A stretch of DNA of 64,000 nucleotides from Ascidiella aspersa (taxonomy: Eukaryota), in the NCBI GenBank assembly GCA_963924565.1, contig OZ004614.1:9734001-9798000 (forward strand), in the 5' to 3' direction. Below are positions 583 to 24,200 of the stretch, piece by piece. The notes beneath the pieces were generated by a model that had not been told where the DNA came from, did no database searches, and saw only the letters and a list, made by a program, of their open reading frames with translations. Position 1 is the first letter of the stretch, and each line of letters starts with the position of its first letter. Position numbers and translations under genes: made by a program.

Positions 583-3500
583 GTTTAATCGGAAGATCGG
601 CCAAGCTGATCACACAGACACAAATGATGCATGAGGAACTTCGGGAAAAGTTGTTCGCCATGCAGAATCAGGTGGGAACTAACAAGCTCATCGTAGCCTA
701 GGATGAGTTAACGGTTTGCGAAAAAGCTATAGTTAAACGCTTCACGCTTGATCGACGCTTAAGGACCTGTTCGTAAAAACTTCCCGTTATGGCAAAGCGT
801 TTGTATACAATTAAATGGGATGTAAAAGACGTGTTAAGTAAAATACATTTTCTGCAATTACCATAATGATGAAACGATTGTCAAAGTTTAATTCCACAGT
901 CGAGAATTCATTAAGAAATCTTTAAAATAAAAAGCCCACTTTACAAGAATTTTTAACAATAAAACTTTTTGCATAGCAGTTTGTTTAACCACGTTAACCT
1001 AACTGATTGTGAAATTTTTTTGGAACCAATAGACATTAAACCTTGGTAAGAAGGATGTGCTCCGACCAATATAATTTAGAAGAAGCTATTTACTATCGAT
1101 TTGAGAAAATATGCTCTAAAAGTAAAAAAAATCGCAATACTAAACATTAAGTCAATCATGGTCATGCCCAACCCAACTGACCGGCAAACAAGGTTATACT
1201 TAACGAAAAACAAAGGTTATACTTAGATAAACACACTGGTTGACTATTGCCAATTTTTCATGGGAGGTCGCAGCGCTTTTCATGCGCATTTACACTTAAA
1301 TAGACCATATGATATGGCCGAGCCCTACACAGTGTTAACACCTGTAGCCATATATAGCGGACACACGTTAGATTTAGACGTAAATTATACATTTAGATGA
1401 TAATCAAGTGGCACTGTTCAACGAAAAAATTCGTCCAATACGAAATTAGTCTTTCAGCACAGCGACTTTCATTAACCCTTTTATGTTAAAGTATACAACA
1501 GATTGCTGTAATTAAATATGGCGGCCGCAACGACCGTTGGTTTGCATTTATAGCTTTTATGAAGGTTTCTAAGGACGGCGAGCGCTTCAAACTCATACTG
1601 TTACTATTTATGTAACAGCGTGTTTTTTTAAACATTTCACGCAAATGGTATGTTTTTGTTAGCCCTACTTTATTTGGTGATCGAAGCCATGGGGCAAAAT
1701 ATATTCGCTCTTATTTCTGCCAGATCCTTAAATTTTTCACCTTAAAATGTTTCTATTTATCCTGTTTATAAAGATTATAGTGAATGCGGATCCGCGTCAA
1801 GTAATCTTAAACACGTTCATTTAAATCCACGCTTGAATAACCTTTCAAAATTCATGTCAGGTCGCTTTGGACTTGGCCTCCTTGAATCTGCAAAGAGGCC
1901 GCGACCACGCACTTCCCCTGTACAACGACTGGCGCGTTCTGTGCAACCTTACCCGGGCAGAAACATTCGACGACTTGGCCGGTGAAATAAGCAACGCAAC
2001 TGTCAGAGAACGACTGAGGACGCTCTATGGCCATCCTGGGTAAGTTGCTGGCTGCTGTGATGATTTTTGCAGGGGTTAGCAATTGGTTATTTATTAGGGA
2101 TGGCCGACACCTCTTATTCTTTGTTCTCATACATATATTCGAAATGATTGGGGTAAAGTATGGCCGTCCGACCGGATAGCACATGACGTCATCAACGTGA
2201 TCGAATAAGCAAAAATGATAAATTGAAACATATTTTTCTGGTAAATAGTTGAAAGTAGCTTAGCGTTAGAAAGCTTAGTTACTCTTGATTTTCTATTTAC
2301 TGCTTTTCAAGAAATTTACATTATAATTATAAAAAATCTACTATAAAAAATCACACAACATGAATAAAATTCACAGAAGGTAATACTTTTTTCGTGTTGG
2401 ATCGGCATTAATACCAACCTAATCGTTCCGAGTTATGCTAAGTATCACAACTAACAACAACTAAAAATTAAATCTCTATAAAGAATAAAGCTAGACGTGT
2501 CAACGAATATTTCTACAAGGGAAAGACGAAACTAATTCACGAATTTAATTTGAGTTTATCCTTATTTAAAAACAAATTTCTGTTAATGCGATCAGATGAA
2601 GTAGAACCAATCAAACTTTGTTGACAAAGGTTCCGTCTAATTGCCAAATGGTTGGTGTATATTCGACAAATTCAAAATCCAATGAAAATATAAAGCCAGG
2701 GCATTCGATAAAATCGACTATTCATTAAATTTGTCGAGAACAATTATATTATCAATGCAAAATGGGATAATGCAAAGGTGGATAAAATAATGGGCTCATT
2801 TTCACAGAAGTGTATTCAGGGAGTTATTTATTCTTAGAGCTATACATATACAAATTGGTGACTCCGAGATGGACTACTTAAGCTGGAAATAATTACAAGG
2901 CTTAATATTGAACTTCACGAGGTTCAATGTTAATGGTGAAGTTCACTTATATGCTTCCAGATTCAGCTTGTTATAAAAGCGATAAAGCCGTTGTATACTC
3001 AACTGGCACATTGTCTACCCCAAATAGATTCTAGGGACTGATAGGGCATCACTTGTTTAGTTTATACTTAAACCCGACCAATAAATAAAACAACCACGGA
3101 TTTAATGACGCATACCTTCGACGGGGAGCCCCAAGACCTAATGCGTATAAATCGCTTTAGGAGTTTTTTAAGCCAATGATTGTCCCTTTGTAGGAACATC
3201 GATCTTTGGTTGGCCGGATTAGCCGAGGACATTTTGCCTGGCGGTTCGAGACTTGGTCCGACCTTCACCTGCTTGCTTGCGCGCCAGTTTAAGGCGCTCA
3301 GAGACGGTGACCGCTTTTACTATCGCAACCCGGGCGTCTTCTCAACAGAACAGGTTTCAAAAACACGTTTTTCTGTTTGCGATTTGTTGCTGGGAAACGG
3401 TCACGCATCTGTGACGTTCAACAGGCAAAACAGGGAATGAAACACGTCCAAGCCCCAACCCCCCAACCAAAAGATATTTCAACTAAGCTGGTTTAGAAAA

Positions 3501-6500
3501 TCGAGTTAGGCCCGCATATCTTTCAGATTCATCTGGGTTTGCGGGCTGTTTTAATTTCAACCGTCCCGGTCGTTTTTATTATCTTGACAGGGATTTTTTG
3601 ACACCCAATGGGACAGCAGTGTTGGGTGAATCAAAGGTTATAGGGGTATAGAGAAATCGACGCGATGTTTGGATTGTACAATGAACCATATTGTCTGGGA
3701 GTGTTTTTCGGTCATGATAAGTACACACGAAGGCCATAAATTAGGGATGGGCTTGGGGTTATGAGGGTATATTTATATAAGAAAAAAGTTAAGGTCGACA
3801 GCTTATAATTTGACGGCGTCGGGCTGCCATTGGGTCACGTAGTCTTTATGGGGTTCACCTGAGAAGTATAAGAAGCATCACAGTTCAAAAATAAGCAGAA
3901 CATCTAAACACAGGGATTAGGTAGGAAAATCATCCTCGGTAGGACAACAAACTAATTAGCCTTACAATGTTAACCGAGACATTGAGTACTCATCGGTAAT
4001 TTAAGTCAATGACTTGACTACAATAAAGTCACCGTTTTCAAATGATATGAATTAAGTTGTTTTGGTAAAACGACTTGACTTCATTGGAGTTTTTTTTTCT
4101 ATAAGTTACTTGACTTTGTCATTGGGCCAAGTGACTTAGGTATAAGTATTTTCATTTAACATTTTACTATAAAATTGATCTATTTATCTCAAGTTTTGCA
4201 CGTAAACTAAGTTATTGATCTTAATCGAATGATTTTATCAATATTCGTAATAAATTTTCTTGATGATGACTTCAAGATTAACTAAATTGAATTTTCTAAA
4301 TAAGTTGAACCCAAGTAATATATTTTTTAACAAGCAGCAAGTAAATGAGCGAAGGATGACTATAATTTCTACACAAATAGTTTCTATATTTTTCCATAGA
4401 TATTGAATGGGTTTTGAGCGAGTGAATAAAAATCTTTCAGCTTTTCGCTTTTCCACAAAGGTTGGAAACCGAATTGCGTTACAGTTTGGACGGGCGATGT
4501 GTATTTGTGTTTGTTTCTGACATGTATCAATTTTTGCGATTAAACGTAACATATAGATAAGAACTTGTATTGTATACAGTCGAAATACCTAGGTGTAGTT
4601 TTTTTGTAGTATTAAAACTGACTTTCTGGCGATGTGTTAAAAAAAAACGCAGAAATATTTAGTAAAACGGAACACCTGGCGTGGTCTTACCGGATGCGGA
4701 GCAGTATAGCCTATTGCAACAGAACGCTTAGAAATTAAAACTCGAAGCAACTGTGCACGATAAAAATCTCGGCAATACAAAAGCCGAAAAAACAACTATA
4801 CTAAAGAAGTGATGAAGTGGTCCGATTGCCGCAGTCAGCTATTACTCACGGTTCCAATCGATAAGATAAGATCAACATCTTCTGTTAAATGTTCACAATG
4901 TATGAAAAAGCTTCGGCTTACGATTGAGGTCTATAAAAGTAAACAAATGTTGTAACACAATCGGGACTGAAAGTAAACAATCTAAACAATCATTTTGGAG
5001 CTACGGAACACTTTATGTGGTTAATAATTTTGCAGAACACGAACAAAAGTTTACAGCAATACCTTACAATAAACAACACAACAATTTAACGCTTTCGGGT
5101 TTTCCTAGACCTAGTGCGATACCTCCTAGGCTTGTTTGGACGGGCACAAAATTTATATTCGGGCTGTGGTGCAATCCTATTATTACGCAACGAGTCTTAA
5201 GCCTATTACTACATAACAGCAAATTAAAAAAAATACTATTGGAATGATAGTGGATAATTAGTTTCATAAATTAAAGTCCATTTTTTTTATAAACCAGTGA
5301 CCGACGATATATTACGGAACATGCGGAACAGCGGTTGAAAATCACTGGGTATTGGCCTCGACCCGATATTATCGTACATACTGTTAGTTACAATGCTAAT
5401 AGTTCGTAAAACTTAGAATGACACCGTTAAAAGTGAATCACCCTTTGAGGCCATCTCAAAACCTAAAGAGGATACACCGATTTCCGTTATTTCGAATAAA
5501 CCCCACATTCCCAAGAAACTTTTGTTACAAAAGACGCAACATTCAACATTTCTCTGCATTGCAGGCTAGCGCCATCGAGGGATTGAGCTTTGCGCGTGTT
5601 ATTTGCGACAACTCTGGGGTGGATCGGGTCCAGACCGACGTGTTCAGACGGGTTGAATATCCGCGCGACTTCGTCAATTGTGACGCAATAACGGCGCTTG
5701 ACCTGAATCTATGGAGGGAAAGCCCCGAAGGTGAGTTTCGCTCATCCAGTTTACATACATAGTAGAGACAAAAGCTGCTCCCAAAGTGATTTGCCGAATA
5801 GTAGCGTATTTTAAGTTTTCCTTAACTTATAATTTTTTAAATACAAGTGCTTAATGTTAACTTCAATATAATTCGATGTGGTATGTCTATTTTTTTAACT
5901 ATCTTTGTTTGATAATTTGAAAGCATTACAAGCCTTGGGCATTTTCAAATGTCTGAGAAAATTAAGTTCTCTGGTGCCACCTTGTATTGAATTAAAGTAA
6001 CTATATCTATCATTAGGGCATGTGAAAATGGGGGTGCTAAGACGGTCACAAAATATCAACCCTAAAGTCAACTTATCTAACTCTTTTTGCAGCGGTGATG
6101 AAAGTATATTAATATTTGCTGATCCATCGTAGCGGTAAAAACAAGTTTTTTTTATGTATACCAAGTGATAGTATTGTTCTGGTCCAATATTAGGGCAGTA
6201 TTGGTTTCAATTGAATATCAAATTAACATGGAATTTTATCACTGAGTTGCAAACCACTTAGTTATTTCTACATTGAATTGTAAATTTTTAAAACAATTGT
6301 AGGTTAACAATTGGCGGTAACTGGACATTTTAGGGCTAATACAAATTTTGGCCTATATTACCCCCCAAAAAAATCACTTTGAACGTTTTAATTGCATCTA
6401 TTTTGCTTGTTGATAATAGTAACGACGTCATTTGGTATCGGATCGGATCTCCATATTTTTTGTCCTTAATATCGAACATCGGTATCGGAATAAAATGGTA

Positions 6501-8618
6501 TCGGACATCTCTAACTTATCCTTAATGTTTTACTATACGACGGTAAAATAGCAATCGCCAGTAGAAAACTACGACCAGCAAACGTTTGAGTTATGGCTGT
6601 GTTTTCTCGCAGTTGGGTCGTGTGGTCGCCCCAAGGACATCGATTACGGAAGTTGGAAGAGATGCGAAGGGCCAAAGGTGGCCTACTATTGCGGGCGAGG
6701 CTTCAAGATTTTCGGGGAAGCCGAAATCGAATGCGTCGGCAGTTCTTTCAACGCCGTTCCACCCATTTGCAAAGGTAAGAATTGGTACTGTCAGCAATGT
6801 GATGGGAAAATTAAGTCAGGATACGCACTATTGGAGACAACTGCTACAAAAGTATAACTTGAAAACAGCTCTTTTTGTCAATCTGAAGTTTTTTAGGCAA
6901 TTAGAAATGACCAAGTATAGTGTATGCAATTTAAGACATCAGCCGACAAATTTTTGTTTGGTTGGCTACTTTAGTCGACAAAATATAGTGCATTATTTCC
7001 TACAAACTACAGTAGCCTATAATCGATATAACTTAGGCTTCTATTTTATTCATGCTATACCTTAAGAAATGTAGCAGGAAATGTAGATTTATTAGTCGGT
7101 TTGGCGTAAAATGTGATTATAGTTCTTACTTGCTGTGTGATGGAAGTATTTATGTTTTACTATTTTAGCTACAAATCAAGTTAAAAATGGGGTGTTTTTA
7201 AATTTTAAAGTTAATATAGATTTATGCTTTGAGAAACGTCTCTGCGTGGGTTACTAAATTTAAGCAAATAATTTAGTTTTAAAAAAAAATTAAACGTAAA
7301 AAAATATGTCTGGTTACGCAGGGCTAAGCACTTTTGCTTTTTAACAGATGAAAACGAATGCATGGTCAATAATGGCGGTTGTGAAGAGGCCTGCACCAAC
7401 TCTGTAGGAAGCTACACATGTGCCTGTTCGGAGGGAAAAACCCTAAATGAAGACGGCATAAGCTGCAAAATGGCGCCTGCTGCCGATGACATTACAGAGG
7501 TAGGCCCAATTGTGTTGAGCGTAGTGAAGTTGCCTATCACCGGTGAAATTGCCACTAAACTAAACTTTTACAAATAATTTGTCCGACGAAACTGGCATGG
7601 GCGGAACAATCAACATCGCACTTTTAACGAAAATTGTTTTTCTTGTTTAATAAGATTAATAACAGGGAATATCGTTTAAAAAAAAAAATCAATTTGAAAA
7701 TTGCAACGCATTAGGTCGATTATTGGGGTAACGCCGTTTCATTTCGAAGAATCCTTTAGGAAAAGCATCGCCATGTGCACCAAATAGGCAAAAATACCTT
7801 TAAAAGTAGCAAAAAATAATCCTGCTATCTTCTTTTTTTGTTTCGCAGCACCCTGGTAGCCACATCGAGGCAATTGCTACTGGTACTGTCCTTGGAATCG
7901 CACTGCTGGTTTTACTGATAGCGTCAGGTGTGCTGCTCTCGAAATACATGTGAGTAAAGTGTTGTGAAAAGCATGAGTTCTTACTTAATGTGTATAGAAC
8001 AGGAAGCTCGGACCAAAAGCAATAGGTATTTTATTTTATAGGCCGTAACAAAATAGCCTATAACGTCCGTTTTACCTACTGTTCTTTGGGGTCAAAGTTT
8101 ACACGCTTGTTCGCATGATTCGCAGTTATTTAATTAGGTCAAATTTCCAATTAACGTTTGTACAATTACAGTGTTGTAAACAATTTATTTTCCAATGTCG
8201 GAAGTCCCAGTCATGACTTTTGTAAAATAATTGTCTGAAGTCAAGTAGTTTTGATTAAATAGCCTAACAAGTGAAGTCAAGAACACCTACCATATATCTG
8301 CCACATGAAAAAAAATGTATATTTGAGAAAAAACATGCCACACATAGAGTATGGGGTTATAACAATTTTTTTTTAACTTTCGAACGAATAACCGCCTTAA
8401 TGCCTTGGGTTTAAGGAGTTTATAACCTAAATAGCTGAAATTATAGAAAAATACCCGATCAAGAGGATTTGATTCTACACTTACTGAACCACGCATCTAA
8501 AACAATTTTGAATGCTTGCAGAACTGCAAAAGCCATGGCAAAATCTGCATCGGGATACCACGATGAGAAGAGTGCTGACGGCAAAGTATACGTCAATAAA
8601 GCAGCCGAGGAAATGTAG
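583..8618 (+). CDS. TPO: Thyroid peroxidase-like heme peroxidase, 3' part (5' exons lie upstream of the window)
   Basis: Phase-consistent GT-AG exons 583-671, 1861-2039, 3194-3353, 5565-5730, 6613-6774, 7348-7499, 7849-7949, 8522-8618(TAG). Translation includes [34 protein letters not shown]...[12 protein letters not shown] and SFARVICDN (animal heme peroxidase), then a Sushi/CCP exon ([10 protein letters not shown]...CGRGF...[14 protein letters not shown]), a Ca-binding EGF exon ([27 protein letters not shown]), a TM exon ([23 protein letters not shown]) and a short tail. This domain order is diagnostic of TPO. Confidence 0.92.
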
Positions 8619-8823
8619 AATCGAGACTGACTTTTCATCGCCCTCTTTGACACCTCGAACACTTCACAGCCATGTTACTTCACGCTTTTCATACGCGACG
8701 TACAGAACCCTACTTATTGAAACCTTTGTTTTATCCGTTAAAAGCCCTTTTTGACAGGCCATACGGATGTAAAAGCTAACAGGTGAAAACAGGTAGACCG
8801 CCATAAAGTTTGCTTTTAGTTGG

Positions 8824-8829
8824 AATAAA
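8824..8829 (+). terminator. Candidate polyadenylation signal of the TPO-like gene (duplicate at 17837-17842)
   Basis: AATAAA ~205 nt after the stop, followed by a U/GU-rich tract (tttttgttgttgttg). Confidence 0.55.
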
Positions 8830-11366
8830 TCATTTTTGTTGTTGTTGTTGCAATTTACTGAATTGAGTTAAACGTTCCGGCGGTGCTTACTGGGTCCTCC
8901 TAAATAGACTTGGACAACTAGATAATTCTAGTTTTCTAATTCAATAAATTAAAGCGAAATGCGACTAAGTTAAACAAAAAATGATTAATTTAAAGACAAA
9001 ATGCGACTAATTCTACATCTAGTTGTCCAAGTCTGCGTCCTAATAACCTCAGGGTTCTGCCTTTACTCTTCAATACAAACCCCTGCGACGTTGTTCTTCC
9101 AAACGTACTTTCCAAATGCAACTGCGAAAACTTTTTTAACGAAAGTGCCTTTTGAATAACAAATATAAATGTATTTTCTTTTTAGTGAAAAGCATAAAAA
9201 TGTGATTTTGTTCGTGGACGAGCTTATATCAGAATGTCGAGTAATGCATTGTATATATATTAAAGACATTTCTTACCTGTGAGGCATCGATGGTAAAAGC
9301 ATTCTCTGCTATTTAAAAAGGCACGACAAATAAATAGATTTTTGTGGAGGTAGGTTAAATGCATAAATAAAAAAATAACTTTTCACTTTACTAATGTGTA
9401 AGATGTGCATTATAACTTTGGGAGAAATCAAGATGTAAAATGCGTTGGTGATAGCAATGAACTCTTTAAAAAAAAAATTGCAAAATGAAAATTGTACAAA
9501 ATGGTGTGCAACTGTGCATATATAACTCGAACATGTGCGAACCACATAAATCAAATGTAAAAATGCTACATACTAAATTTAACAACCCACTGCGATTTAA
9601 GCAACAGAAGATAGTGCAAGCAAAATAAAGAAGTGCAAATGGAACAAAAACATATTTTAAAATAAACGAGAAAGTGCAATGGTGTTCCATACAACTCTAA
9701 AATAGACGTAGTCCATGACATAAAAACACGTACAATGCGATTTGTCAGATTTGCGTATATAAACAGTAAACAGTGAATAGGTCGACTTGTAATAACAAAC
9801 ACACCAACTTGAAAGCAATAAATCAAAACTCTTAAGTCAACGTAATGTAAAAAATGCACTACTACCAAATACGCTCTATCTTGAAGAAAGCTGGGTTGCT
9901 ATGGGGCTTAAAAATATGAGTTTACCCCTTCATAAAAATCGATGAGGCTAAAAATAGAAATCGAACAAAGACCCAAGGCGAATTTATGATCCAAGTTGAA
10001 GCTTTCCTGTACACGAGAATAGAGATCCGGTTTTCAGGCCCTGTTCAACAAAAGAAGACTTGTAAAATATCGTATATGTTTTGATTTTTCGTTCTTTTGT
10101 TTTTTTTAATCTTTTTGCTGCAAAATAAAACATCGTCACGTGCAAAAAAGATGAATGTTACATCACCGGCGAAATATTTTTTCGCATTTTTTACTAGGGC
10201 AGACGAATTTACTCAAATTATACAACAATTGCAAAATGGGTTCTTAACTCGATGCCTTAGGGTACGTAGTCTAGCTTTAGGGGGGGTCCACGAATGCCTA
10301 ATGGAAACCGTAGTGTATAATTAAAAAATGTAATGATTTTTTTTAAATAAAATACTAGTAGTTAAAAATACGCTTTAGCCTCTTCTTGAATGTATTAAGA
10401 CTTAATTTCACTTTCGATTTACGCATGAGTTACATCGGAAACAGCAATAACTTTGCCTTATGACACCATCACTGAAAAATTACATGACAACCTTGTTCAA
10501 GCGAACCAAAGTTAATTATAGGGCAGGGAACCGCAATCCCAAAATATAAGTTCTAAAGTCGTGCGACCAAAATATTTCGCGGGTTGTTTTTAGTTTAAAC
10601 GTTGGCCTATGACTGTTTATTTGTAGCGACTTTTCTCAAAACTTTGAGCTTTGTCCATATTGAAAATACTCAACAGGAATTGCGTTTTAAGCAAAAATGC
10701 ATTTATATATATCAAGTTTACATCTACATTTAAAAAAATAAAAAGTGTTACGTCTCTAGGGCGCTATAACGAAAGAGCTAAAAATATTTTTTCATAGTAA
10801 ATAAAACATAATAAGAAGCAAAATCGGATTAGCGCCAAGTAAAAAGTTTAAATTTAGATAGTTAATATGGGCAACAATTAGTTCCAAGGATACGAATCAA
10901 AAATTGACAAAAACGAAGCTAGCTATGTCTAATATTTTTCAGTGTATTATCAAATTCATAAATTTTAAGATTTTTGCGATCCAAAGTGAACCTTATATCG
11001 ACCCACTTTTTACGGACCCCTGTTTTAAGAACCCTTGATCTACAAGATGATGGAGTATTATTTATTAAACCAAAAAGTGTAACTGGGAGATTAGGACCAA
11101 AGCAAGCTTATTAATACTTCCTATGTACTCGTAGGCAGGTTCAAGGAAAGCCAAAAAATAAATAGCGGATAGCTTTTTGTTTGAAACAGGAGTTAAACAT
11201 TCTATCGTGAGCGATTTTTCTCCTTTTTTTCTCTTAACTGATTTTTATACTAAACTCTTAATAAGCCGCGCAAAAAACACGGAATTGCCGACCATATAGC
11301 TTTGGGCAAGCTACTTAACACAAATACCAGGCTAGAACTTGTTTTTTTTTGTGCTGGTATCTTGAC

Positions 11367-11477
11367 TTACTTGAAGTTTCTGACCACAAACCAACGTTCA
11401 CTCTCGTCCTCTCCAGGCTGCGAATAGCTCCTCTGCTTTCTCAGACGCTTTTCGGCCGACACCGACTTTTCCATGAT
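11367..11477 (-). CDS. Duplicated (distal) copy of the last identified TRPV exon
   Basis: Intact acceptor (atatatag|ATC). Reads IMEKSVSAEKRLRKQRSYSQPGEDESERWFVVRNFK*, versus IMEQ...QRCYSQ... in the proximal copy at 20382-20492. Confidence 0.65.
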   Translation of the reverse strand: MMEKSVSAEKRLRKQRSYSQPGEDESERWFVVRNFK

Positions 11478-12279
11478 CTATATATGAGCAAAACAAAAAC
11501 GGGTCTGGAAACAAGACTTGGACGACCAGATTTATTTTGGGAACACAATGCAATATGTACGGATCTGTAATGTAGCTTGGTAATAAATTACAAAGTCAAA
11601 AAGGTCGAGTAGATCGACATCATCTTAATTACTGTATAGGACGTTTCGATACGACCTTTTATCATCTTTAGTTAATTGTGACTGAGAAGCGATTAAAGCA
11701 ACACTTAAAAAACTAGGGACGCAATTGTTAGAAGATATAAAAGGTGGGACGCAATTGTTCGATTTATTTTACTTTTTAAAATAAGATTAGAATTTAAATC
11801 AGAGCAATTCATTTTATTTTTTAATTTGATTAGAACTAGAATTATATATTATCATAATCACAATCCAGTTGATTTAAATCGCAATTTATTCTCTTAAGAA
11901 TCGAATTGGCAAATATTCTCGTGCAATATTTTATAAGTTTTTTCCCGACTAAATATTATTATTTCGAATTCTATGTTTCGACTAAGCGACAAAAATTGCC
12001 GTTGGAAAAAGCAGCATTATTGATTGTCGAATTAGATAAGAACTCGAATTAGAGCACTCAAGCAATTTACGAATTAGATTAGAATTAGAATTAGCCGCAT
12101 TTTGCTCGAATTCATTGAATTAGAAAACTAGAATTAGCTAGTTGTCCAAATCTGGTTGGAGCGCTTGGTGTTTTTTTTCCCGAAAAGTGAGCCTGCGACT
12201 TGGGGTGCATGATTCTACCGATACCGATACGTGGTCGTTTGAACGACACCCGATTTCAAATATCGGAAATAAAAATCGG

Positions 12280-15200
12280 AACCCGAGCGTCTTCTCAACA
12301 GAACAGGTTTGAAAAGCACGTTTTTCTGTTTGCGATTTGTTGCTGGGAAACGGTCACGTATCTGTAGCGTTCATTGATGTGCATATAAGCTCATCAGTAC
12401 AGGCAAAACAGGGAATGAAACACGCCCAAGCCCCAACCAAAAGATATTTCAATTAAGCTGGTTTAGAAAATCGAGTTAGGCCCGCATATCTTTCAGATTC
12501 ATCTGGATTTGCGGGCTGTTTTAATTTCAACCGTCCCGGTCGTTTTTATTATCTCGACAGGGATTTTTTGACACCCAATGGGACAGCAGTGTTGGGTGAA
12601 TAAAAGCTATAGGGTATAAATAAATCGACGCGATGTATGGATTGGACAATGAACCATATTGTCTGGGAGTGTTTTTCGGTCATGATAAGTGCACACGAAG
12701 GCCATAAGTTAGGGATGGGCTTGGGGTTATAAGGGTATATTTACATAGAAAAAAAGTTAAGGTCGACAGCATATAATTTGGCGGCGTCGGGCTGCCATTG
12801 GGTCACGTAGTCTTTATTTTTATGGGGTTGAACTGAGAAGTATAAGAAGCATCACAGTTCAAAAATAAGCCGAACATCTAAACACAGGGATTAGGTAGGA
12901 AAATCATCCTCGGTAGGACAACAAACTAATTAGCCTTACAATGTTAAGCGAGACATTGGTAATTTAAGTCAATGACTTGACTAAAGTGCAATAAAGTCAC
13001 CGTTTTCAAATGATATGAATTAAGTTGTTTTGGTAAAACGACTTGACTTCATTGGAGTTTTTTTTTTCTATAAGTTACTTGACTTTGTCATTGGGCCAAG
13101 TGACTTAGGTATAAGTGTTTTCATTTAACATTTTACTATAAAATTGATCTATTTATCTCAAGTTTTGCACGTAAAACTAAGTTATTGATCTTAATCGAAT
13201 GATTTTATCAATATTCGTAATAAATTTTCTTGATGATGACTTCAAGTTTAACTAAATTGAATTTTCTAAATAAGTTGAACCCAAGTAATATATTTTTTAA
13301 CAAGCAGCAAGTAAATGAACGAAGGATGACTATAATTTCTACACAAATAGTTTCTATACTTTTCCATAGATATTGAATGGGTTTTGAGCGAGTGAATAAA
13401 AATCTTTCAGCTTTTCGCTTTTCAACAAAGGTTGGAAACCGAATTGCTGTACAGTTTGGACGGGCGATGTGTATTTGTGTTTGTTTCTGACATGTGTCAA
13501 TTTTTGCGATTAAACGTAACATATAGATAAGAACTTGTATTGCATACAGTCGAAATACCTAGGTGTAGGTTTTTTGTAGTATTAAAACTGACTTTCTGGC
13601 GATGTGTTAAAAAAAACGCAGAAATATTTAGTAAAACGGAACACCTGGCGTGGTCTTACCGGATGCGGAGCAGTATAGCCTATTACAACAGAACGCTTAG
13701 AAATTAAAACTCGAAGCAACTGTGCACGATAAAAATCTTGGCAACACAAAAGCCGAAAAAACAACTATACTAAAGAAGTGATGAAGTGGTCCGATTGCCG
13801 CAGTCAGCTATTACTCACGGTTCCAATCGATAAGATAAGATCAACATCTTCTGTGAAATGTTCACAATGTATGAAAAAGCTTCGGCTTACGATTAAGGTC
13901 TACAAAAAGTAAACTAATGTTGTAACACAATCGGTATTGAAAGTAAACAATCTAAACAGTCATTTTGGAGCTACGGAACACTTTATGTGGTTAATAATTT
14001 TGCAGGACACGAACAAAAGTTTACACCAATACCTTACAATAAACAACACAACAATTTAACGCTTTCGGGTTTTTCTAGACCTAGTGCGATACCTCCTAGG
14101 CTTGTTTGGACGGGCACAAAATTTATATTCGGGCTGTGTTGCAATCCTATTATTACGCAACGAGTCTTAGGCCCATTACTACATAACAGCAAATTAAAAA
14201 AATTACTATTGGAATTATAGTGGATAATTAGTTTCATAAATTAAAGTCCATTTTTTTTATAAACCAGTGACCGACGATATATTACGGAACACCTGACGAT
14301 ATTTTACGGAACATGCGGAACAGCGGTTGAAAATCACTGGGTATTGGTCTCGATCCGATATTATCGTACGTACTGTTAGTTACAATGCTAATAGTTCGTA
14401 AAACTTAGAATGACACCGTTCAAAGTGAATCACCCTTTGAGGCCATCTCAAAACCTAAAGAGGATACACCGATTTCCGTTATTTCGAATAAACCCCACAC
14501 CCCCAAGAAACTTTTGTTACAAAAGAAGTAACATTAAACATTTCTCTGCATTGCAGGCTAGCGCCATCGAGGGATTGAGCTTTGCGCGTGTTATTTGCGA
14601 CAACTCTGGGGTGGATCGGGTCCAGACCGACGTGTTCAGACGGGTTGAATATCCGCGCGACTTCGTCAATTGTGACGCAATAACGGCGCTTGACCTGAAT
14701 TTGTGGAGGGAAAGCCCCGAAGGTGAGTTTCGCTCGTCCAGTTTACATACATAGTAGAGACAAAAACTGCTCCCAAAGTGATTTGCCGAATAGTAGCGTA
14801 TTTTAAGTTTTCCTTAACTTATATTTTTTTTAAATACAAGTGCTTAATCTTAACTCCAATATAATTCGATGTGGTATGTCTATTTTTTTAACTATCTTTG
14901 TTTGATAATTTGAAAGCATTACAAGCCTTGGGCATTTTTAAATGTCTGAGAAAATTAAGTTCTCTGGTGCCACCTTGTATTGAATTAAAGTAACTATATC
15001 TATCATTAGGGCATGTGAAAATGGGGGTGCTAAGACGGTCACAAAATATCAACCCTAAAGTCAACTTATCTAACTCTTTTTGCAGCGGTGATGAAAGTAT
15101 ATTAATATTTGCTGATCCATCGTAGCGGCAAAAACAAGTTTTTTTTATGTATACCAAGTGATAGTATTGTTCTGGTCCAATATTAGGGCAGTATTGGTTT

Positions 15201-18200
15201 CAATTGAATATCAAATTAACATGGAATTTTAGCAATGAGTTGCAAACCACTTAGTTATTTCTACATTGAATTGTAAATTTTTAAAACAATTGTAGATTAA
15301 CAACTGGCGGTAACTGGACATTTTAGGGCTAATACAAATTTTGGCCTATATTACCCAAAAAAAAATCACTTGAACGTTTTAATTGCATCTATTTTGCTTG
15401 TTGATAATAGTAACGACGTCATTTGGTATCGGATCGGATCGCCATATTTTTTGTCCTCAATATCGAACATCGGTATCGGAATAAAATGGTATCCGACATC
15501 TCTAACTAATCCTTAATGTTTTACTATACAACGGTAAAACAGCAATCGCCAGTAGAAAAATACGACCAACAAACGTTTGAGTTATGGCTGTGTTTTCTCG
15601 CAGTTGGGTCGTGTGGTCGCCCCAAGGACATCGATTACGGAAGCTGGAAGAGATGTAGGATAACAAAGGTGGCCTACTATTGTGGGCGAGGCTTCAAGAT
15701 TTCCGGGGAAGCCGAAATCGAATGCGTCGGCAGTTCTTTCAACGCTGATCCACCCATTTGCAAAGGTAAGAATTGTTACTGTCAGCAATGTGATGGGAAA
15801 AATTAAGTCAGGATACGCACTATTGGAGACAACTGCTACAAAAGTATAACTTGAAAACAGCTCTTTTTGTCAATCTGAAGTTTTTTAGGCAATTAGAAAT
15901 GACCAAGTATAGTGTATGCAATTTAAGACATCAGCCGACAAATTTTTGTTTGGTTGGCTACTTTAGTCGACACAATATAGTGCATTATTTCCTACAAACT
16001 ACAGTAGCCTATAATCGATATAACTTAGGCTTCTATTTTATTCATGCTACAACTTAAGAAATGTAGCAGGAAATGTAGATTTATTAGTCGGTTTGGCGTA
16101 AAATGTGATTATAGTTCTTACTTGCTGTGTGATGGAAGTATTTATGTTTTACTATTTTAGCTACAAATCGAGTTAAAATGGGGTGTTTTTAAATTTTAAA
16201 GTTAATATAGATTTATGCTTTGAGAAACGTCTCTGCGTGGGTTACTAAATTTAAGCAAATAATTTAGTTTTGAAAAAAAAAATTAAACGTAAAAAAATAT
16301 GTCTGGTTACGCAGGGCTAAGCACTTTTGCTTTTTAACAGATGAAAACGAATGCATGGTCAATAATGGCGGTTGTGAAGAGGCCTGCACCAACTCTGTAG
16401 GAAGCTACACATGTGCCTGTTCGGAGGGAAAAACACTAAATGAAGACGGCATAAGCTGCAAAATGGCGCCTGCTGCCGATGACATCACAGAGGTAGGCCC
16501 AATTGTATTGAGCGTAGTGAAGTTGCCTATCACCGGTGAAATTGCCACTAAACTAAACTTTTACAAATAATTTGTCCGACGAAACTGGTATGGGCGGAAC
16601 AATCAACATTGCACTTTTAACGAAAATTGTTTTTCTTGTTTAATAAGATTAATAACAGGGAATATCGTTTAAAAAAAAAAATAAAATAAAGCTAAACTGA
16701 TACTCAATTTGAAATTGCAACGCATTAGGTCGATTATTGGGGTAACTCCGTTTCATTTCGAAGAATTCTTTAGGAAAAGCATCGCCATGTGCACCAAATA
16801 GGCAAAAATACCTTTAAAAGTAGCAAAAAATAATCCTGCTATCTTCTTTTTTGTTTCGCAGCACCCTGGTAGCCACATCGAGGCAATTGCTACTGGTACT
16901 GTCCTTGGAATCGCACTGCTGGTTTTACTGATAGCGTCAGGTGTGCTGCTCTCGAAATACACGTGAGTAAAGTGTTGTGAAAAGCATGAGTTCTTACTTA
17001 ATGTGTATAGAACAGTAAGCTCGGACCAAAAGCAATAGGTATTTTATTTTATAGGCCGTAACAAATTAGCCTATAACGTCCGTTTTACCTACTGTTCTTT
17101 GGGGTCAAAGTTTACACGCTTATTCGCATGATTCGCAGCTATTTAATTAGGTCAAATTTCCAATTAACGTTTGTACAATTACAGTGTTGTAAACAATTTA
17201 TTTTCCAATGTCGGAAGTCCCAGTCATGACTTTTGTAAAATAATTGTCTGAAGTCAAGTAGTTTTGATTAAATAGCCTAACAAGTGAAGTCAAGAACACC
17301 TACCATATATCTGCCACATGAAAAAAAATGTATATTTGAGAAAAAACATGCCACACATAGAGTATGGGGTTATAACAATTTTTTTTTAACTTTTGAACGA
17401 ATAACCGCCTTAATGCCTTGGGTTTAAGGAGTTTATAACCTAAATAGCTGAAATTATAGAAAAATACCCGATCAAGAGGATTTGATTCTACACTTACTGA
17501 ACCACGCATCTAAAACAATTTTGAATGCTTGCAGAACTGCAAAGGCCATGGCAAAATCTGCATCGGGATACCACGATGAGAAGAGTGCTGACGGCAAAGT
17601 GTACGTCAATAAAGCAGCCGAGGAAATGTAGAATCGATACTTAGTTTTCATCGCCCTCTTTGACACCTCGAACACTTCACAGCCATGTTACTTCACGCTT
17701 TTCATACGCGACGTACAGAACCCTACTTATTGAAACCTTTGTTTTATCCGTAAAAAGCCCTTTTTGACAGGCCATACAGACATAAGAGCTGACAGGTGAA
17801 AACAGGTAGACCGCCATAAAGTTTGCTTTTAGTTGGAATAAATCGTTTTTGTTGTTGCAATTTACTGAATTGAGTTAAACGTTCCGGCGGTGCTTACTGG
17901 GTCCTCCTAAATAGACTTGGACAACTAGATAATTCTAGTTTTCTAATTCAATAAATTAAAGCGAAATGCGACTAATTCAAATAAAAAATGATTAATTTAA
18001 AGGCAAAAAGCGACTAATTCTACATCTAGTTGTCCAAGTCTGCGTCCTAATAACCTCAGGGTTCTGCCTTTACTCTTCAATACAAACCCCTGCGACGTTG
18101 TTCTTCCAAACGTACTTTCCAAATGCAACTGCGAAAACTTTTTTAACGAAAGTGCCTTTTGAATAACAAATATAAATGTATTTTCTTCTTAGTGAAAAGC

Positions 18201-21200
18201 ATAAAAATGTGATTTTGTTCGTGGACGAGCTTATATCAGAATGTCGAGTAATGCATTGTATATATATTAAAGACATTTCTTACCTGTGAGGCATGGATGG
18301 TAAAAGCATTCTCTGCTATTTGAAAAGGCACGACAAATAAATAGATTTTTGGGAGGTAGGTTAAATGCATAAATAAAAAAACAACTTTTCACTTTACTAA
18401 TGTGTAAGATGTGCATTATAACTTTGGGAGAAATCAAGATGTAAAATGCGTTGGTGATAGCAATAAAAAAAAAAAAATTTGCAAAATGAAAATTGTACAA
18501 AATGGTGTGCAACTGTGCATATATAACTCGAAACATGTGCAAACCACATAAACAAAAGTAAAAATGCTACATACTAAATTTAACAACCCACTGCGATTTA
18601 AGCAACAGAAGATAGTGCAAGCAAAATAAAGAAGTGCAAATGGAACAAAAACATATTATAAAATAAACGAGAAAGTGCAATGGTGTTCCATACAACTCTA
18701 AAATAGACGTAGTCCATGACATAAAAACACATACAATGCGATTTGTCAGATTTGCGTATAAACAGTAAACAGTGAGTAGGTCAACTTGCAATAAAAAACA
18801 CACCAACTTGAAAGAACTAAATCAAAAATCTAAATCAACGTAATGTAAAAAATGCACTGCTACCAAATACGCTCTATCTTGAAGAAAGCTGGGTTGCTAT
18901 GGGGCTTAAAAATATGAGTTTACCCCTTCATAAAAATAGATGAGGCTAAAAATAGAAATCGAACAAAGACCCAAGGCGAATTTATGATCCAAGTTGAAGC
19001 TTTCCTGTCCACGAGAATAGAGATCCTGTTTTCAGGCCCTGTTTAACAAAAGAAGACTTGTAAAATATCGTATATGTTTTGATTTTTCGTTCTTTCGTTT
19101 TTTTTTAATCTTTTTGCTGCAAAATAAAACATCGCCACGTGCAAAAAAAGATGAATTTTACATCACCGGCGAAATATTTTCTCGCATTTTTTACTAGGTA
19201 GGACGAATTTACTAAAATTATACAACAATTGCAAAATGGGTTCTAAACTGGATGCCTTAGGGTATGTAGTCTAGCTTTAGGGGGGTCCACGAATGCCTAA
19301 TGGAAACCGTAGTGTATAATTAAACAATGTAATGATTTTTTTTAAATAAAATACTAGTAGTTAAAAATACGCTTTAGCCTCTTCTTGAATGTATTAAGAC
19401 TTAATTTCACTTTCGATTTACGCATGAGTTACATCGGAAACAGCAATAACTTTGCCTTATGACACCATCACTGAAAAATTACATGACAACCTTGGTCAAG
19501 CGAACCAAAATTAATTGTAGGGCAGGGGTCCGCAATCCCAAAATAAAAGTTCTAAAGTCGTGCGACCAAAATATTTCGCGAGTTGTTTTTAGTTTAAACG
19601 TTTGCCTATGACTGTTTATTTGTAGCGACTTTTCTCAAAACTTTGAGCTTTGTCCATATTGTAAATACTCAACAGGAATTGCGTTTTAAGCAAAAATTCA
19701 TTTATATATATCAAGTTTACATCTACATTTAAAAAAATAAAAAGTGTTACGTCTCTAGGGCGCTACAACGAAAGAGCTAAAAATATTTTTTCATAGTAAA
19801 TAAAACATAATAAGAAGCAAAATCGGATTAGCGCCAAGCAAAAAGTTTAAATTTAGATAGTTAATATTGGCAACAATTAGTTCCAAGGATACGAATCAAA
19901 CATTGACAAAAACGAAGCTAGCTATGTCTAATATTTTTCAGTGTATTATCAAATTCATAAATTTTAAGATTTTTGCGATCCAAAGTGAACCTTATATCGA
20001 CCCACTTTTTACGGACCCCTGTTTTAAGAACCCTTGATCTACAAGATGATGGAGTATTATTTATTAAACCAAAAAGTGTAACTGGGAGATTAGGACCAAA
20101 GCAAGCTTATTAATACTTCCTATGTACTCGTAGGCAGGGGACAATTTTGCTTTTTACATTCAAGGAAAGCCAAAAAATAAATAACGAATAGCTTTTTGTT
20201 TGAAACAGGAGTTAAACATTCTATCGTGAGCGATTTTTCTCCTTTTTTTCTCTTAACTGATTTTTATACTAAACTCTTAATAAGCCGCGCAAAAAACACG
20301 GAATTGCCGACCATAGCTTTGGGCAAGCTACTTAACACAAATACCAGGCTAGAACTTGTTTTTTTTTGCTGGTATCTTGACTTACTTGAAGTTTCTGACC
20401 ACAAACCAACGTTCACTCTCGTCCTCTCCAGGCTGCGAATAGCACCTCTGCTTTCTCAGACGCTTTTCGGCCGACACCGACTGTTCCATGATCTATATAT
20501 GAGCAAAACAAAAACGGGTCTGGAAACAAGACTTGGACGACCAGATTTATTTTGGGAACACAATGCAATATGCACGGATCTGTAATATAGCTTGGTAATA
20601 AATTACAAAGTCCAAAAAGGTCGAGTAGATCGACATCATCTTAATTACTGTATAGGACGTTTCGATACAACCTTTTATCCTCTTGAGTTAATTGTGACTG
20701 AGAAGCAATTAAAGTATGGCTTAAAAAAATAGGGACGCAATTGTTAGAAGATATAAAAGTGGGACGCAATTGTTCGATTTATTTTACTTTTTAAAATAAG
20801 ATTAGAATTTAAATCGTAATTCATTTTATGTTTTAATTTGATTAGAACTAGAATTATATATTATCATAATCACAATCCAGTTGATTTAAATCGCAATTTA
20901 TTCTCTTAAGAATCGAATTGGCAAATATTCTCGTGCAATATTTTATAAGTTTTTTCCCGACTAAATATTATTATTTCGAATTCTATGTTTCGACTAAGCG
21001 ACAAAAATTGCCGTTGGACAAAGCAGCATTTTTGATTGTCGAATTAGATAAGAACTCGAATTAGAGTACACAAGCAACATAGAACGTAGATTAAATTAAA
21101 GTTAGCCGCATTTTGCTCAAATTCATTGAATTAGAAAACTAGAATTAGCTAGTTGTCCAAATCTGGTTGGAGCGCTTGGTGTTTTTTTTCCCGAAAAGTG

Positions 21201-21292
21201 AGCCTGCGACTTGGGGTGCATGATTCTACCGATAACGATACGTGGTCGTTTTAACGACACCCGATTTCAAATATCGGAAATAAAAATCAGAA
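12280..21292. repeat. ~9-kb direct tandem duplication, unit 2
   Basis: Begins aacccgagcgtcttctcaacagaacag, matching 3327-3353. Ends ...atatcggaaataaaaatc, matching the end of unit 1. Confidence 0.97.
14557..17631 (+). CDS. Duplicated TPO-like C-terminal module (peroxidase C-term, Sushi, EGF, TM, tail); alternative 3' end or gene fragment
   Basis: Exons 14557-14722, 15604-15765, 16341-16492, 16862-16962, 17535-17631(TAG). Same lengths as the first copy, all AG/GT sites intact, no stops or frameshifts. It has no 5' exons of its own. Confidence 0.75.
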
Positions 21293-24200
21293 GAAAACAC
21301 AGAGATAATCCAATCAACGACTCACCAGAACCATCTTGGCCCACTGTCTTTGCCATTCCCACCGCGTTTCGGCAATCTTGTTGAAGGTTCTTCCCATCAT
21401 GGCGATGAGCACGTTAATGAGAAGGATGGTCACGAACACCATGTATATCACGAACAGTGTCTGTGAAGCAACGTGATGTGTTAGTGAGGCTTGTGATAAA
21501 CATGGAATATACGGTGATCTAGAGTCCTGCTGAAGTGTTACTGACCAACGATTGTGACATACCAGCGTCGTAATGACTTAAGTCAATAATTTTACTTAAG
21601 TCACTGTTTATTAAAACGACTAGGCTTGATTTAATTATTTTGAACTAGTGATTTGGCTTGGACTTAGTCATTCAGTCAAAAAACTTTGGTTGAAACTGAC
21701 TTGGGTAAAACGTAAAAGTATTTTCTAAACATTTCTTCCTAGGTTATTTATCTCAATTTTTGCAACAATTTGTTAGCAAAATATTACGTTTTGTCATTTA
21801 TCGTTGAGGTACCGCTCATATTCCAATGATGTTACCAAATCTAAAAGTTAGCCGTTTATTTTCAATTCATTGACTGGATTGAAATTGACTTGCACTATAA
21901 ATGACTTGGGCTGCAACTTGACTTGGGCAACATTTTGCTTGGACTGGGACTTAACTTGTTGTTGTTTTTTGCAAAATACCTGGACTTTTGTTAATTTACC
22001 GTGTGAGTAAAGCTAAATCGAACACAGCGAAAAGAGGGGAAATAATAGTATAAAATAAATCTTCACACAATTATATCATTTACTTATCTAAAGTTAAAAA
22101 AACGTGCTAAAAAGCCATTTTTCGTACAAAACAGCCTAACAAATGTTGTTGAAATTTGACATTTGTACCATGACTACTCACTTTTTTACTGTACAACAGG
22201 TTTAGCTATTCAATTGCAAAGTAATGCAAAAACAGTAGAAAAAAATTTTTTTCAGGGGGAGGATAATTTTTTATTTTAGCCTAAATCTGAATTTTCAAAT
22301 TGACGTAGCACGGTCAATACTGAACTAAACGTGCTCAGATTTGTTTTGTGGTTTTTTTAGACGCAACCTAACAATTGAAAATTTGACAAAAGAGTGTATT
22401 TTGAACAACCCTAATAAAGATCTGTATAGATTCCTCATAAAGCGTTATTTTTTGCTCTTTCCTACGACTGCATATATTGATTTTGTTAAAAATTACTCGG
22501 CAAACTTGACTGATAACAGTTTGGTACTAATACAGCAGTTATAACACTTCTAATTTAAAAGGTGATATTCTCTTGCCGTATTGACCTAATAATAGGCGCT
22601 ATTTCACTTGAAGGATAAATTAGTCTTAAAAAGCGGTTTAAAGGGTTCAAGCGGTATAAAATAGGTTGAGAACCACTTCGGATAAAAAAGCAAACAAACT
22701 AACAAAAAATGTAATAGCCCAACCTTGGCTGCGGCTGGATGACGCGCATTGTCGAAGTCGGCGTACAAATCACCAAACTCCCCCAACGTAATGACGAACA
22801 TGCCAAGGATGGAAAGCGCAGGGTGCGAAAACAGGTCGTGGGTCGTTCCACGAAAGCAGATAAACATCGCTGCAACACAGGGATCGAAATGATTCGAGCA
22901 TAATGACCATAGTAAGATTTAGAACATAACAATATTGGGCCAGATCTAATTATATTTTCTGTAAGGCATTGTTGTAATGACTTAATTCACTGTTTTTAAA
23001 TGACTTGACTTGACTTGACTTAAGTCTTTTAGGCAAAATACCTTTACTTGACTTAGGTATTTTTGACAAATTACCCGACTTGACTTGACATAAGTCTCTT
23101 GTACAAATGACTTGGGTTAAAGTCAATGATTTCATCAAGCAAGTTTTTATAATATTGGGTTAATTAATTTGCTTGCTTTATATATATATTGCGTGTATTC
23201 ATTTTTTATTGCTCTTAATCGCCGATGACTTAGACTTGGACTTAAGTTATTTTACGAATGACTTAAGTAATTTCAAAATGACTTATTTACAACACTGATG
23301 TAAGGTGAGATAAGGTTATTGAGAATATCCAGAATATTAGTTTTTTAGCCATGAAAACAGTGGCCCGGGTAACATAGAATCAACAATTCGTTTGGGGAGA
23401 GTTCGGTTTTAGAAAAAAGTAGTTAATTTTTTATTTAGTAATAGCCAAAAAAACAGGAGGAGGGGGCAAAACGACAATAGGGACAACATCGAAGTACACC
23501 CAATGGAGATAAATACCGAAAAATTGTACCAATTGCGAATCAGTTTATCAACTAGCACCTCGAAAAATTCACCTTGTGAAAATCCCAGCAGGAAAATGGC
23601 GTAGATCATAAGAAATCGCAAGAGGTCGCCCGAGATCATGTTGTACACGGCGACGATGAAAGGACCCAGTAACTTGAAGCCTCTAGGAGAGAAGACATAG
23701 TAGAGTGATTTCATATCAAATCACCCAATTTGAATCACATTTCTGATCTGACCCTTAGTTTATTTAATGTGATTCACACAGCAGCTTACGAATGAGAAAA
23801 TACCTATAAGTTGTAAATTTTATAAAAAATCGGTCAAATACTTCCGGAGATATCGCACTTTAAGATAGGAATGATTTCGTCAGTGGTTGGCGCTAGAAAC
23901 TTTGTGTTTTTGATAATATCCTATGATTAGGGATATTCGACAATCGATAATATCGAAACGGTGTCGATACCCGATGCTAAAGTATCGGTATTTGTTCGAT
24001 ACTAGGCTGATATCGGTTGCTATCCTCTACCAAATTAATGTAGGGATTTTAGCTTTTATTTGCGATTCAACGGAGTGGTTTCTAACTTAAAAAGTTCATT
24101 TCACCAAAAATAGTAAAGTGACAATCAAAGGTAACGGTGATCAACACTAACCAACTTTTCGCCTAATAATCTGAAAATCATTACCTTCGCTCGTTTTACG

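Follow-up and report, generated by a model that had tools for sequence, protein, structure and literature searches.

Alternative last exons, as well as transcriptional interference between convergent genes and natural antisense pairs, are known classes. Tandem assembly errors form another known class in polymorphic genomes, as set out in HaploMerger2 (PMC5870766) and by Ko et al. 2022 (PMC9516828), and sea squirts are very polymorphic according to PMC1868934. Ko et al. 2022 describe a gap between the copies as the most frequent situation in false duplications, and a true allele-specific duplication inside a contig, with haploid read depth, is mentioned as well (PMC9516828).

The window analysed here, a stretch of 64,000 nucleotides from Ascidiella aspersa, contains a direct head-to-tail repeat of a 9-kb unit (Table 1). 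Compared by blastn of the window against itself, its copies A and B match at 95.85% over 9067 columns. When aligned end to end with MAFFT, they mismatch at 231 of 8908 aligned bases (97.4% identity) and show 35 indel events, which sum to 162 bases, with 25 bases in the largest. No other direct repeat of at least 400 bases occurs within the window, and the unit was found exactly twice in the 308.6-Mb assembly, both times here. Each copy carries the five 3' exons of a TPO-like gene on the forward strand and the terminal coding exon of a Nanchung-like TRPV gene on the reverse strand. A unit of this content had been proposed in a preliminary description of the same DNA, and blastn, MAFFT and an exon check bear it out.

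Table 1. Coordinates of the tandem unit, its junction and the gene tails it contains (positions in the window)
Feature	Position	Strand	Evidence and remarks
Copy A of the unit	3322..12281	no strand	blastn self-match and MAFFT
Copy B of the unit	12275..21292	no strand	blastn self-match and MAFFT
Junction heptamer ATCGGAA	12275..12281	no strand	sequence comparison
Dispersed repeat member, about 400 bp	11761..12161	no strand	the other near 20776-21172; stops some 120 bases short of the junction
Last unduplicated TPO-like exon (peroxidase domain)	3180..3353	+	Pfam An_peroxidase 68.6 bits; donor 3353, phase 0; 3180 is the start of the open frame, no mapped acceptor; final 32 bases inside the unit
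a1, proximal, end of peroxidase domain	5565..5730	+	weak Pfam An_peroxidase, 17.3 bits
a2, proximal, Sushi/CCP	6613..6775	+	Pfam Sushi 20.2 bits (cut-off 20.7)
a3, proximal, EGF-like	7348..7499	+	Pfam FXa_inhibition 41.5 bits (cut-off 33.4), EGF_CA 21.9 bits
a4, proximal, hydrophobic, membrane-span-like stretch	7849..7949	+	read by eye from the translation
a5, proximal, coding part and stop	8522..8618	+	AATAAA at 8824 and 8943
Orphan duplicate of the exon end at 3353 (final 32 bases); donor, no acceptor	12275..12306	+	
b1, distal	14557..14722	+	2 synonymous differences from a1
b2, distal, Sushi	15604..15766	+	differs from a2 at 13 bases, an 8-base block (15656-15663) among them; 5 residues change
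b3, distal, EGF-like	16341..16492	+	2 synonymous differences from a3
b4, distal	16862..16962	+	1 difference from a4, at the last base; codon split over the b4/b5 junction, Ile to Thr
b5, distal, with stop	17535..17631	+	2 synonymous differences from a5
TRPV terminal coding exon, proximal, 36 codons and TAA	20382..20492	-	tblastn of Clavelina homologue P0003, residues 687-725
TRPV terminal coding exon, distal	11367..11477	-	2 base differences from the proximal exon, giving 2 residue differences (K/Q, S/C)
Penultimate TRPV exon, with S6 and TRP box; lies beyond the unit	21326..21478	-	donor 21326, phase 0; upper limit set by where the tblastn match stops

On its left side the unit breaks within the TPO-like exon ending at 3353, and on its right side 34 bases into the TRPV intron that follows donor 21326. 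No N letters occur in the 64-kb window, and thus none at the A/B junction. They are also lacking from 20 pieces of 10 kb sampled over the surrounding 464 kb (about 264 kb together with the window), a sample of separate pieces that cannot reveal 9-kb repeats. The heptamer at the junction shares six of its seven letters with the start of copy A (3322-3328) and six of seven with the end of copy B (21286-21292), and these two parental ends agree with each other at five of seven. When 200,000 pairs of positions were drawn at random from the window, 1.9% matched in at least five of seven letters (P ~0.019). Judged by its letters, the heptamer is a hybrid of both parental ends, a putative microhomology at the join. 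The junction pattern had no matches in metagenome contigs, a result that is uninformative. A member of a dispersed family (about 400 bp; 2851 first-look candidates in the genome) sits in both copies, which explains the depth spikes in the read table. No Rfam family was found at gathering scores in positions 1-40000.

Thyroid peroxidase combines a haem peroxidase domain with a Sushi domain, an EGF domain and a membrane span. The haem peroxidase domain of the TPO-like gene was recognized by Pfam (PF03098, 74.8 and 68.6 bits), and the best solved relatives are myeloperoxidase, eosinophil peroxidase and lactoperoxidase; the domain and structure searches were run with individual exons or open frames from the window. 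The putative order in the tail is Sushi, EGF and membrane span, of which the Sushi match is just below the cut-off and the span was read by eye. The gene begins beyond the window, which lacks its 5' part. In both copies, the tail exons have equal AG/GT sites, lengths and phases (0,1,1,0,2). Outside the Sushi exon, six of the coding differences are synonymous and one is non-synonymous; the residue changes within it (b2 versus a2) are EGP/RIT, F/S and V/D. The polyA signal that had been assigned to the unit stands in so far as hexamers lie downstream of the stops in both copies; as evidence these are weak, since such hexamers are common in this AT-rich DNA.

The facing gene is predicted to encode a TRPV channel of the Nanchung-like type, given its ankyrin repeats, six-span core, TRP box and best matches among TRPV proteins. 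Pfam Ank and Ion_trans were detected, and the TRP box follows S6. Searched exon by exon, Nanchung was the best match (E 9.8e-15 and 1.2e-17), followed by Inactive and TRPV1-6. Fifteen tblastn segments in the window are collinear with the Clavelina homologue P0003 along its length, and the closest homologue is a Phallusia protein (P0155, 66% identity). The window's own TRPV protein, sought through the Clavelina relative, was not in the protein collection searched, and the 36-residue tail exon alone had no match among solved structures. The stop of this exon overlaps GTAAGT, and the exon could be read as internal. This reading was rejected, as four of six sea-squirt homologues among those listed end 3-7 residues past the same ...VRNFK motif; seven homologues were listed in all, and the JGI protein P0162, which diverges in the motif, is left out of the base of six.

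In terms of splicing, the layout is as the preliminary description had it: by their splice contexts, phases and stops, the proximal tails of both genes are intact, and the distal ones are intact and phase-compatible. Donor 3353 is in phase 0 and acceptors 5565 and 14557 share one context, while acceptors 20492 and 11477 have an identical context that is compatible with the phase 0 donor 21326. The joins 3353>14557 and 21326>11477 are thus compatible as claimed. The geometry was also described correctly, in that use of a distal tail would need transcription across the tail of the other gene.

Of the 40 variant sites listed, 34 show the letter of the other copy in other individuals, and these individuals also differ among themselves. 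For example, X1 and X2 are of opposite copy-types at 11805, 13359, 14074 and 14849, and at most listed sites each has one contig and one letter. In X6, only the other copy's letter was found at 14348 (8/8), at 14736, 14849 and 15540 (4/4 each) and at 9940, 10604 and 10869 (3/3 each). At four positions with the same letter in A and B, X6 has a third letter at 100%, and so it is an animal other than the assembled one. Within the TRPV tail, X1 combines the copy-B letter at 11468 with the copy-A letter at 11429, and the residue differences between the two tails are therefore segregating alleles. Going by counts of other letters, the reference diverges from the contigs of other individuals by 1.0-3.5% here, a range that includes the 2.6% between A and B. 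The other copy's letters in other individuals, together with the mutual differences, identify the A/B differences as population alleles and not as divergence after duplication. They are of the allelic kind.

At least one other individual, X2, lacks the duplication. A contig of this animal (record 13, 445 bases) runs unbroken through 12281 and continues with 157 bases that do not fit the reference; its depth of 101.7 is about that of most X2 contigs here, and the X2 depth at 12300-12899 is 0. In X1 and X2, the depth of heterozygous contigs is roughly half that of the remaining ones, and the totals fit two haplotypes, not four. For X6, the depth is 3.5x over 24 bins free of repeats, where a single copy should give 6.27x. 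There was thus no sign of extra copies of the unit in X1, X2 and X6, all of them other individuals, by a rough test that compares depth inside the unit only and takes its calibration from genome size and, internally, from the contrast between heterozygous and homozygous contigs. None of the listed reads or contigs of other individuals, a part of 303 loose ends and 3009 pieces, bridges 12281. Other animals seem to be without the repeat.

In our judgement, there is about an even chance that the repeat is a real but unfixed, rare structural variant of the assembled haplotype, built from two haplotypes. One non-homologous, microhomology-aided join would then link the last TRPV intron, 34 bases in, to the TPO-like exon, 32 bases short of its end, and place two versions of one 9-kb segment in tandem. 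The two versions would represent two different population haplotypes, brought together by exchange between homologues, or by later recombination of the duplicated chromosome with single-copy ones. The TPO-like gene would splice from 3353 to 5565 and end in copy A, the TRPV gene from 21326 to 20492 and end in copy B, and the junction-side copies would be spare and most likely unused. Because the segment covers the facing 3' ends of both genes, neither would be broken. The presence of the junction in the DNA, its origin by such a join and the silence of the distal tails are inferred. The gapless sequence at the junction, in the window and in the sampled surroundings points to a real variant, as false duplications are mostly gap-separated. 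So do the microhomology, the occurrence of the unit exactly twice and only here, and the sites, frames and stops kept in all ten TPO-like and both TRPV tail exons. Against it stand the lack of any listed read or contig (from other individuals) across 12281, and the X6 depth. Moreover, a young duplication within one chromosome should have identical copies, yet these differ by 2.6% and 35 indels that are population alleles, so a real variant needs either homologue exchange or a long history. A long history sits poorly with X2, which lacks the repeat, and with the X1 and X2 contig depths, which suit two haplotypes. There is a substantial, if less than even, chance that the repeat is a false heterotype (haplotypic) duplication. 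An assembly haplotype duplication had been raised as a caveat in the preliminary description, alongside unequal crossover between alleles, and that caveat is favoured now that the copies are found to differ like alleles. Here each chromosome would carry one copy, A and B would be alleles of two homologues, and the assembler, or a gap-closing or joining step, would have put overlapping ends of haplotype contigs in series. This accounts for the divergence with its many small indels, inside the range seen between reference and individuals, for the other copy's letters at 34 of 40 sites, and for the opposite copy-types of X1 and X2 at four sites. It also agrees with the X2 contig that crosses 12281 unbroken before its 157 non-fitting bases, with zero X2 depth beyond the junction, and with two-haplotype contig depths. 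Parts of the literature describe sea squirts as very polymorphic and tandem assembly errors as known in such genomes (PMC1868934, PMC5870766, PMC9516828). A false duplication is opposed by the lack of a gap, the commonest mark of such errors, between the copies and in the roughly 264 kb sampled, by the microhomology, which a simple abutting of contig ends does not predict, and by the fact that this is the only such repeat in the window.

Two further explanations were considered. An old tandem duplication, fixed in the species and diverged by 2.6% afterwards, is the least probable explanation of all and was rejected. Only the divergence itself and the intact exons speak for it. At 95% likeness, both letters would be expected at each A/B site, but X1 and X2 mostly have one, X6 has only the other copy's letter at many sites, and the X2 contig passes unbranched through the breakpoint. 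It is very improbable, too, that each gene picks a proximal or distal C-terminal tail and that antisense transcription couples the choices. Each choice would send antisense transcription over the active tail of the other gene, making the choices mutually exclusive. Intact distal exons with identical splice contexts and compatible phases are in its favour, as are the coding differences in the TPO-like tail outside the Sushi exon, 6 synonymous and 1 non-synonymous. The alternative tails, by contrast, are only 2 of 36 residues apart in TRPV, where the differences are segregating alleles (X1 at 11468 and 11429), and differ in five Sushi residues and one split codon in the TPO-like gene. The repeat is also absent from at least one other individual, and distal use would require read-through past a complete terminal exon and its poly(A) hexamers, with five good acceptors skipped. 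The single RNA run, X7, has no reads on distal TPO-like exons (depth 0 on b1 and b2), and likewise none that mark the proximal ones; in the bin holding the distal TRPV exon its depth is 0.44, at most about one read. About 6 in 100 of this run were read, a part in which neither gene is measurably expressed, and at 95% likeness reads from the proximal copy would also land on distal exons. Being almost without reads on either gene, the run is uninformative on use or non-use of the tails. For the distal tails to matter, the junction would have to be real, the variant kept in the population and the distal tails used by read-through transcripts, a highly unlikely combination in which the Sushi domain and two TRPV residues would be switched. 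The proposal of a coupled choice between two C-termini is therefore unsupported, with tails nearly identical and a repeat that looks absent elsewhere. The repeat is a rare variant or an assembly error and not a demonstrated means of choosing gene endings; it amounts to no more than a one-haplotype variant, and is no designed gene architecture.

If the junction is real, the locus offers a tidy duplication across two convergent gene ends that harms neither gene, and the spare terminal exons it leaves would serve as raw material, along a route that is already known and only modestly interesting. Should the repeat instead be an assembly error, it is a warning only: exon and gene counts in this polymorphic sea-squirt assembly need read checks before evolutionary stories are built on them.

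Compared with known systems, the locus resembles the false heterotype duplications treated in parts of PMC9516828 and PMC5870766, in that adjacent copies differ as alleles do and the differences are common to the population. The very polymorphic group and the lack of any sign of a second copy in other individuals add to this likeness; unlike in such duplications, no assembly gap separates the copies, and the junction has microhomology. With allele-specific tandem duplications, or copy-number variants, it shares the head-to-tail order, the gapless and sharp microhomology junction and the intact genes. It departs from them in that the copies are already 2.6% apart and carry population alleles, which calls for an origin between homologues or later recombination. 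The geometry would also permit alternative last exons in an antisense pair, with two facing genes and a second set of terminal exons past the end of the other gene. In contrast to such pairs, the alternative products are almost identical and the arrangement is not common to other individuals.

Self-comparison of the first 24 kb reveals one long direct repeat, in which 3322-12281 (copy A) and 12275-21292 (copy B) lie head to tail at 95.85% identity over 9067 columns. It first showed up as 16 families in register, with a spacing of about 9.0 kb. Global alignment of the copies gave 97.4% identity, with 231 mismatches (127 transitions and 104 transversions) in 8908 aligned bases, and 35 indel events totalling 162 bases, the largest of 25 bases. 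The 64-kb window contains no N bases and no other direct repeat of at least 400 bases, and the 9-kb unit occurs only twice in the whole assembly (308.6 Mb, 75 records). The left breakpoint falls inside the exon of the TPO-like gene (+ strand) that ends at 3353, so that copy B opens with an orphan 32-base exon end plus donor (12275-12306). The right breakpoint falls in the last intron of the TRPV gene (- strand), 34 bases past the donor. The heptamer at the junction (12281), ATCGGAA, is a hybrid of both parental ends, which match in 5 of 7 letters, a likeness found in 1.9% of random pairs.

The exon boundaries proposed in the preliminary description hold. In the TPO-like gene, the exon before the tail ends at 3353 (phase 0), and the tail itself is intact in both copies, with five exons of equal lengths, AG/GT sites and phases. 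The penultimate TRPV exon ends at 21326, also in phase 0, and the terminal coding exon begins at 20492 (copy B) and 11477 (copy A), with an identical acceptor and 36 codons to TAA. A reading of this last exon as internal, its stop overlapping GTAAGT, was rejected. It is terminal, because four of six listed sea-squirt homologues stop 3-7 residues past the ...VRNFK motif.

Features of the TPO-like gene in the window
Feature	Position	Strand	Score
An_peroxidase (animal haem peroxidase domain)	frame 1837-2040	+	74.8 bits
An_peroxidase (animal haem peroxidase domain)	frame 3180-3437	+	68.6 bits
Sushi	frame 6552-6854	+	20.2 bits (cut-off 20.7)
EGF-type modules	frame 7272-7574	+	FXa_inhibition 41.5 bits
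Tail exons, copy A	5565-5730, 6613-6775, 7348-7499, 7849-7949, 8522-8618 (stop)	+	
Tail exons, copy B	14557-14722, 15604-15766, 16341-16492, 16862-16962, 17535-17631	+	

Other animals indicate what the differences between the copies are. Two Logan contig sets labelled as the same species (X1, containing 0.70 of the sampled words, and X2, containing 0.40), a DNA run of raw Illumina reads (X6) and a run of raw RNA reads (X7) were compared with 9900-15899, which covers the junction, with the distal TRPV exon to its left and the first two TPO-like tail exons of copy B to its right. Among 40 listed sites with a letter other than the one in the window (154 more exist), 34 matched the other copy, five matched neither copy, and one had no aligned partner. 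One X1 contig (13960-15440, 1481 bases) had 15 other letters over 36 sites at which the copies differ, and another (10903-11173) had none over two such sites. At 11805, 13359, 14074 and 14849, X1 and X2 were of opposite copy type, and within the TRPV tail exon X1 combined the copy-B letter at 11468 with the copy-A letter at 11429. Both copy types occur as a mosaic in these animals; the differences between the copies are therefore alleles segregating in the population, and not changes acquired after a duplication. X6 comes from an animal other than the assembled one, as it carries a third letter at four sites where the copies agree (14034 in 6/7 reads, 14113 in 3/3, 14151 in 4/4 and 14347 in 8/8).

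None of the records listed from X1, X2, X6 and X7 bridged the junction. In X2, a contig of 445 bases (depth 101.7) matched 11732-11852 and 12120-12281, departed from the reference exactly at the last base of copy A, and continued for 157 bases that match nothing within 9900-15899. It ran unbranched through the breakpoint with a depth near that of most other X2 contigs in this stretch; across 12300-12899, X2 depth was zero. By depths that are rough, being measured inside the unit only (9900-15899), heterozygous pieces of X2 stood at about 52-59 and others at about 100-115; in X1, the two alleles of a 270-base indel stood at 62.5 and 54.4, and most pieces at 52-65. Summed over non-repeat bins, equally rough depths had maxima of about 117 for X1 and about 161 for X2 (mostly 85-140), whereas four copies would give about 220. 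Both sets fit two haplotypes, not three or four. On the same rough basis, X6 averaged 3.5x over 24 non-repeat bins, compared with 6.27x expected from letters read and genome size.

Each copy contains, about 120 bases short of its end, a dispersed repeat some 400 bp long (11761-12161 and about 20776-21172; 2851 first-look candidates genome-wide). In X2, one X1 allele and three X6 reads, about 260-270 of its bases were missing or replaced, with joints at 11852>12120 and 11799>12072. The repeat thus carries an insertion/deletion polymorphism, which is common to both copies.

An old, fixed duplication was rejected, as both letters would then be expected at each differing site in every animal. The repeat has about an even chance of being a real, rare, haplotype-specific duplication. 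In favour of a real junction we counted the occurrence of the unit only twice in the assembly, the hybrid heptamer, and the lack of any gap here or in 20 sampled 10-kb pieces across 464 kb. Passages of Ko et al. (PMC9516828) describe false duplications as mostly gap-separated, sometimes by wrongly filled sequence, alongside one genuine, allele-specific tandem duplication within a contig. A false haplotypic duplication, that is, an assembly artefact, is a serious possibility that falls somewhat short of even. It would agree with the allele-like behaviour of the copies in all tests run here, and with the repeat not being seen in X1, X2 or X6. Moreover, sea squirts rank with the most polymorphic animals according to an excerpt of one source (PMC1868934), and part of another treats tandem assembly errors as a recognised class in such genomes (PMC5870766).

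If the duplication is real, a single join with microhomology would have linked the TRPV intron to the TPO-like exon. Either this join was between two homologues, or the flank-side halves would later have been replaced by recombination with single-copy chromosomes. Since the unit covers both 3' ends, each gene would still reach its own complete tail first. The junction-side copies would lie past an entire terminal exon, and to use them would take read-through and the skipping of five good acceptors.

The coding differences between the tails are small. The TRPV tails differ at two bases, both residue-changing (K/Q and S/C), TPO-like tail exons 1, 3 and 5 have two synonymous differences apiece, and exon 4 has a single one in a split codon (Ile/Thr). 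Of the 163 bases of the Sushi exon, 13 differ, eight of them in one block, with five residue changes; the exon falls in one of the two most diverged 500-base bins of the unit (28 mismatches). Tail choice would therefore alter very little protein, the Sushi module excepted. The earlier proposal that each gene chooses between two C-termini, coupled by antisense transcription, was not borne out, given near-equal proteins outside Sushi and the need for read-through and acceptor skipping; we consider such coupling highly improbable. In the Sushi block, eight consecutive bases differ (6665-6672 versus 15656-15663, EGP to RIT) within an exon that otherwise aligns well, pointing to a block substitution or a short conversion tract. 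In the bin of the copy-B block, the contig depth of X1 and X2 drops to half, a hint that neither set carries this block.

The RNA run had zero depth over the first two copy-B tail exons and 0.44 in the bin of the distal TRPV exon, at 95% likeness, which would let proximal-copy reads land on the first of these tail exons and on the TRPV exon too. Neither gene was therefore measurably expressed in the part read (about 6/100 of the run), and the run is uninformative on tail use. Within 9900-10099, five RNA reads, the first mate always on the + strand, cover 9940 and extend past the left end of the compared stretch (9900). They have the copy-A letter, seen in none of the DNA data sets, and represent either a long TPO-like 3' UTR or antisense or TRPV read-through RNA.

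No Rfam family reached gathering score in 1-40000, and open frames on both strands at about 42800-47650 resemble two related genes of the short-chain reductase type.

Homology searches used single exons or open frames, not a joined spliced model. The TRPV exons (about 37.4 kb to 20.4 kb) are collinear with Clavelina lepadiformis protein P0003 (729 residues). Of the homologues found, the closest belongs to Phallusia mammillata (66% identity across matched exons), and among solved structures two of the exons match Nanchung best (E 9.8e-15 and 1.2e-17), followed by Inactive and TRPV1-6. The top match of the S6/TRP-box exon in the representative library, P0001 (4342 residues, 68 matched stretches), resembles the translation of a tandem array, or an assembly anomaly in another data set.

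In the TPO-like gene, read-through of the weak donor at 3353 (GTTTCA) adds 28 codons (3354-3437), part of which the Pfam peroxidase profile still aligns, to profile position 521 of 530; this likeness could be accidental, or the remnant of a former exon end. Among solved structures, the peroxidase exon is nearest to myeloperoxidase, eosinophil peroxidase and lactoperoxidase. A hydrophobic exon and a short tail complete the 3' part of the gene, its 5' part being beyond the window. The order of peroxidase, Sushi, EGF-type modules, hydrophobic exon and short tail is what we take to be that of thyroid peroxidase.
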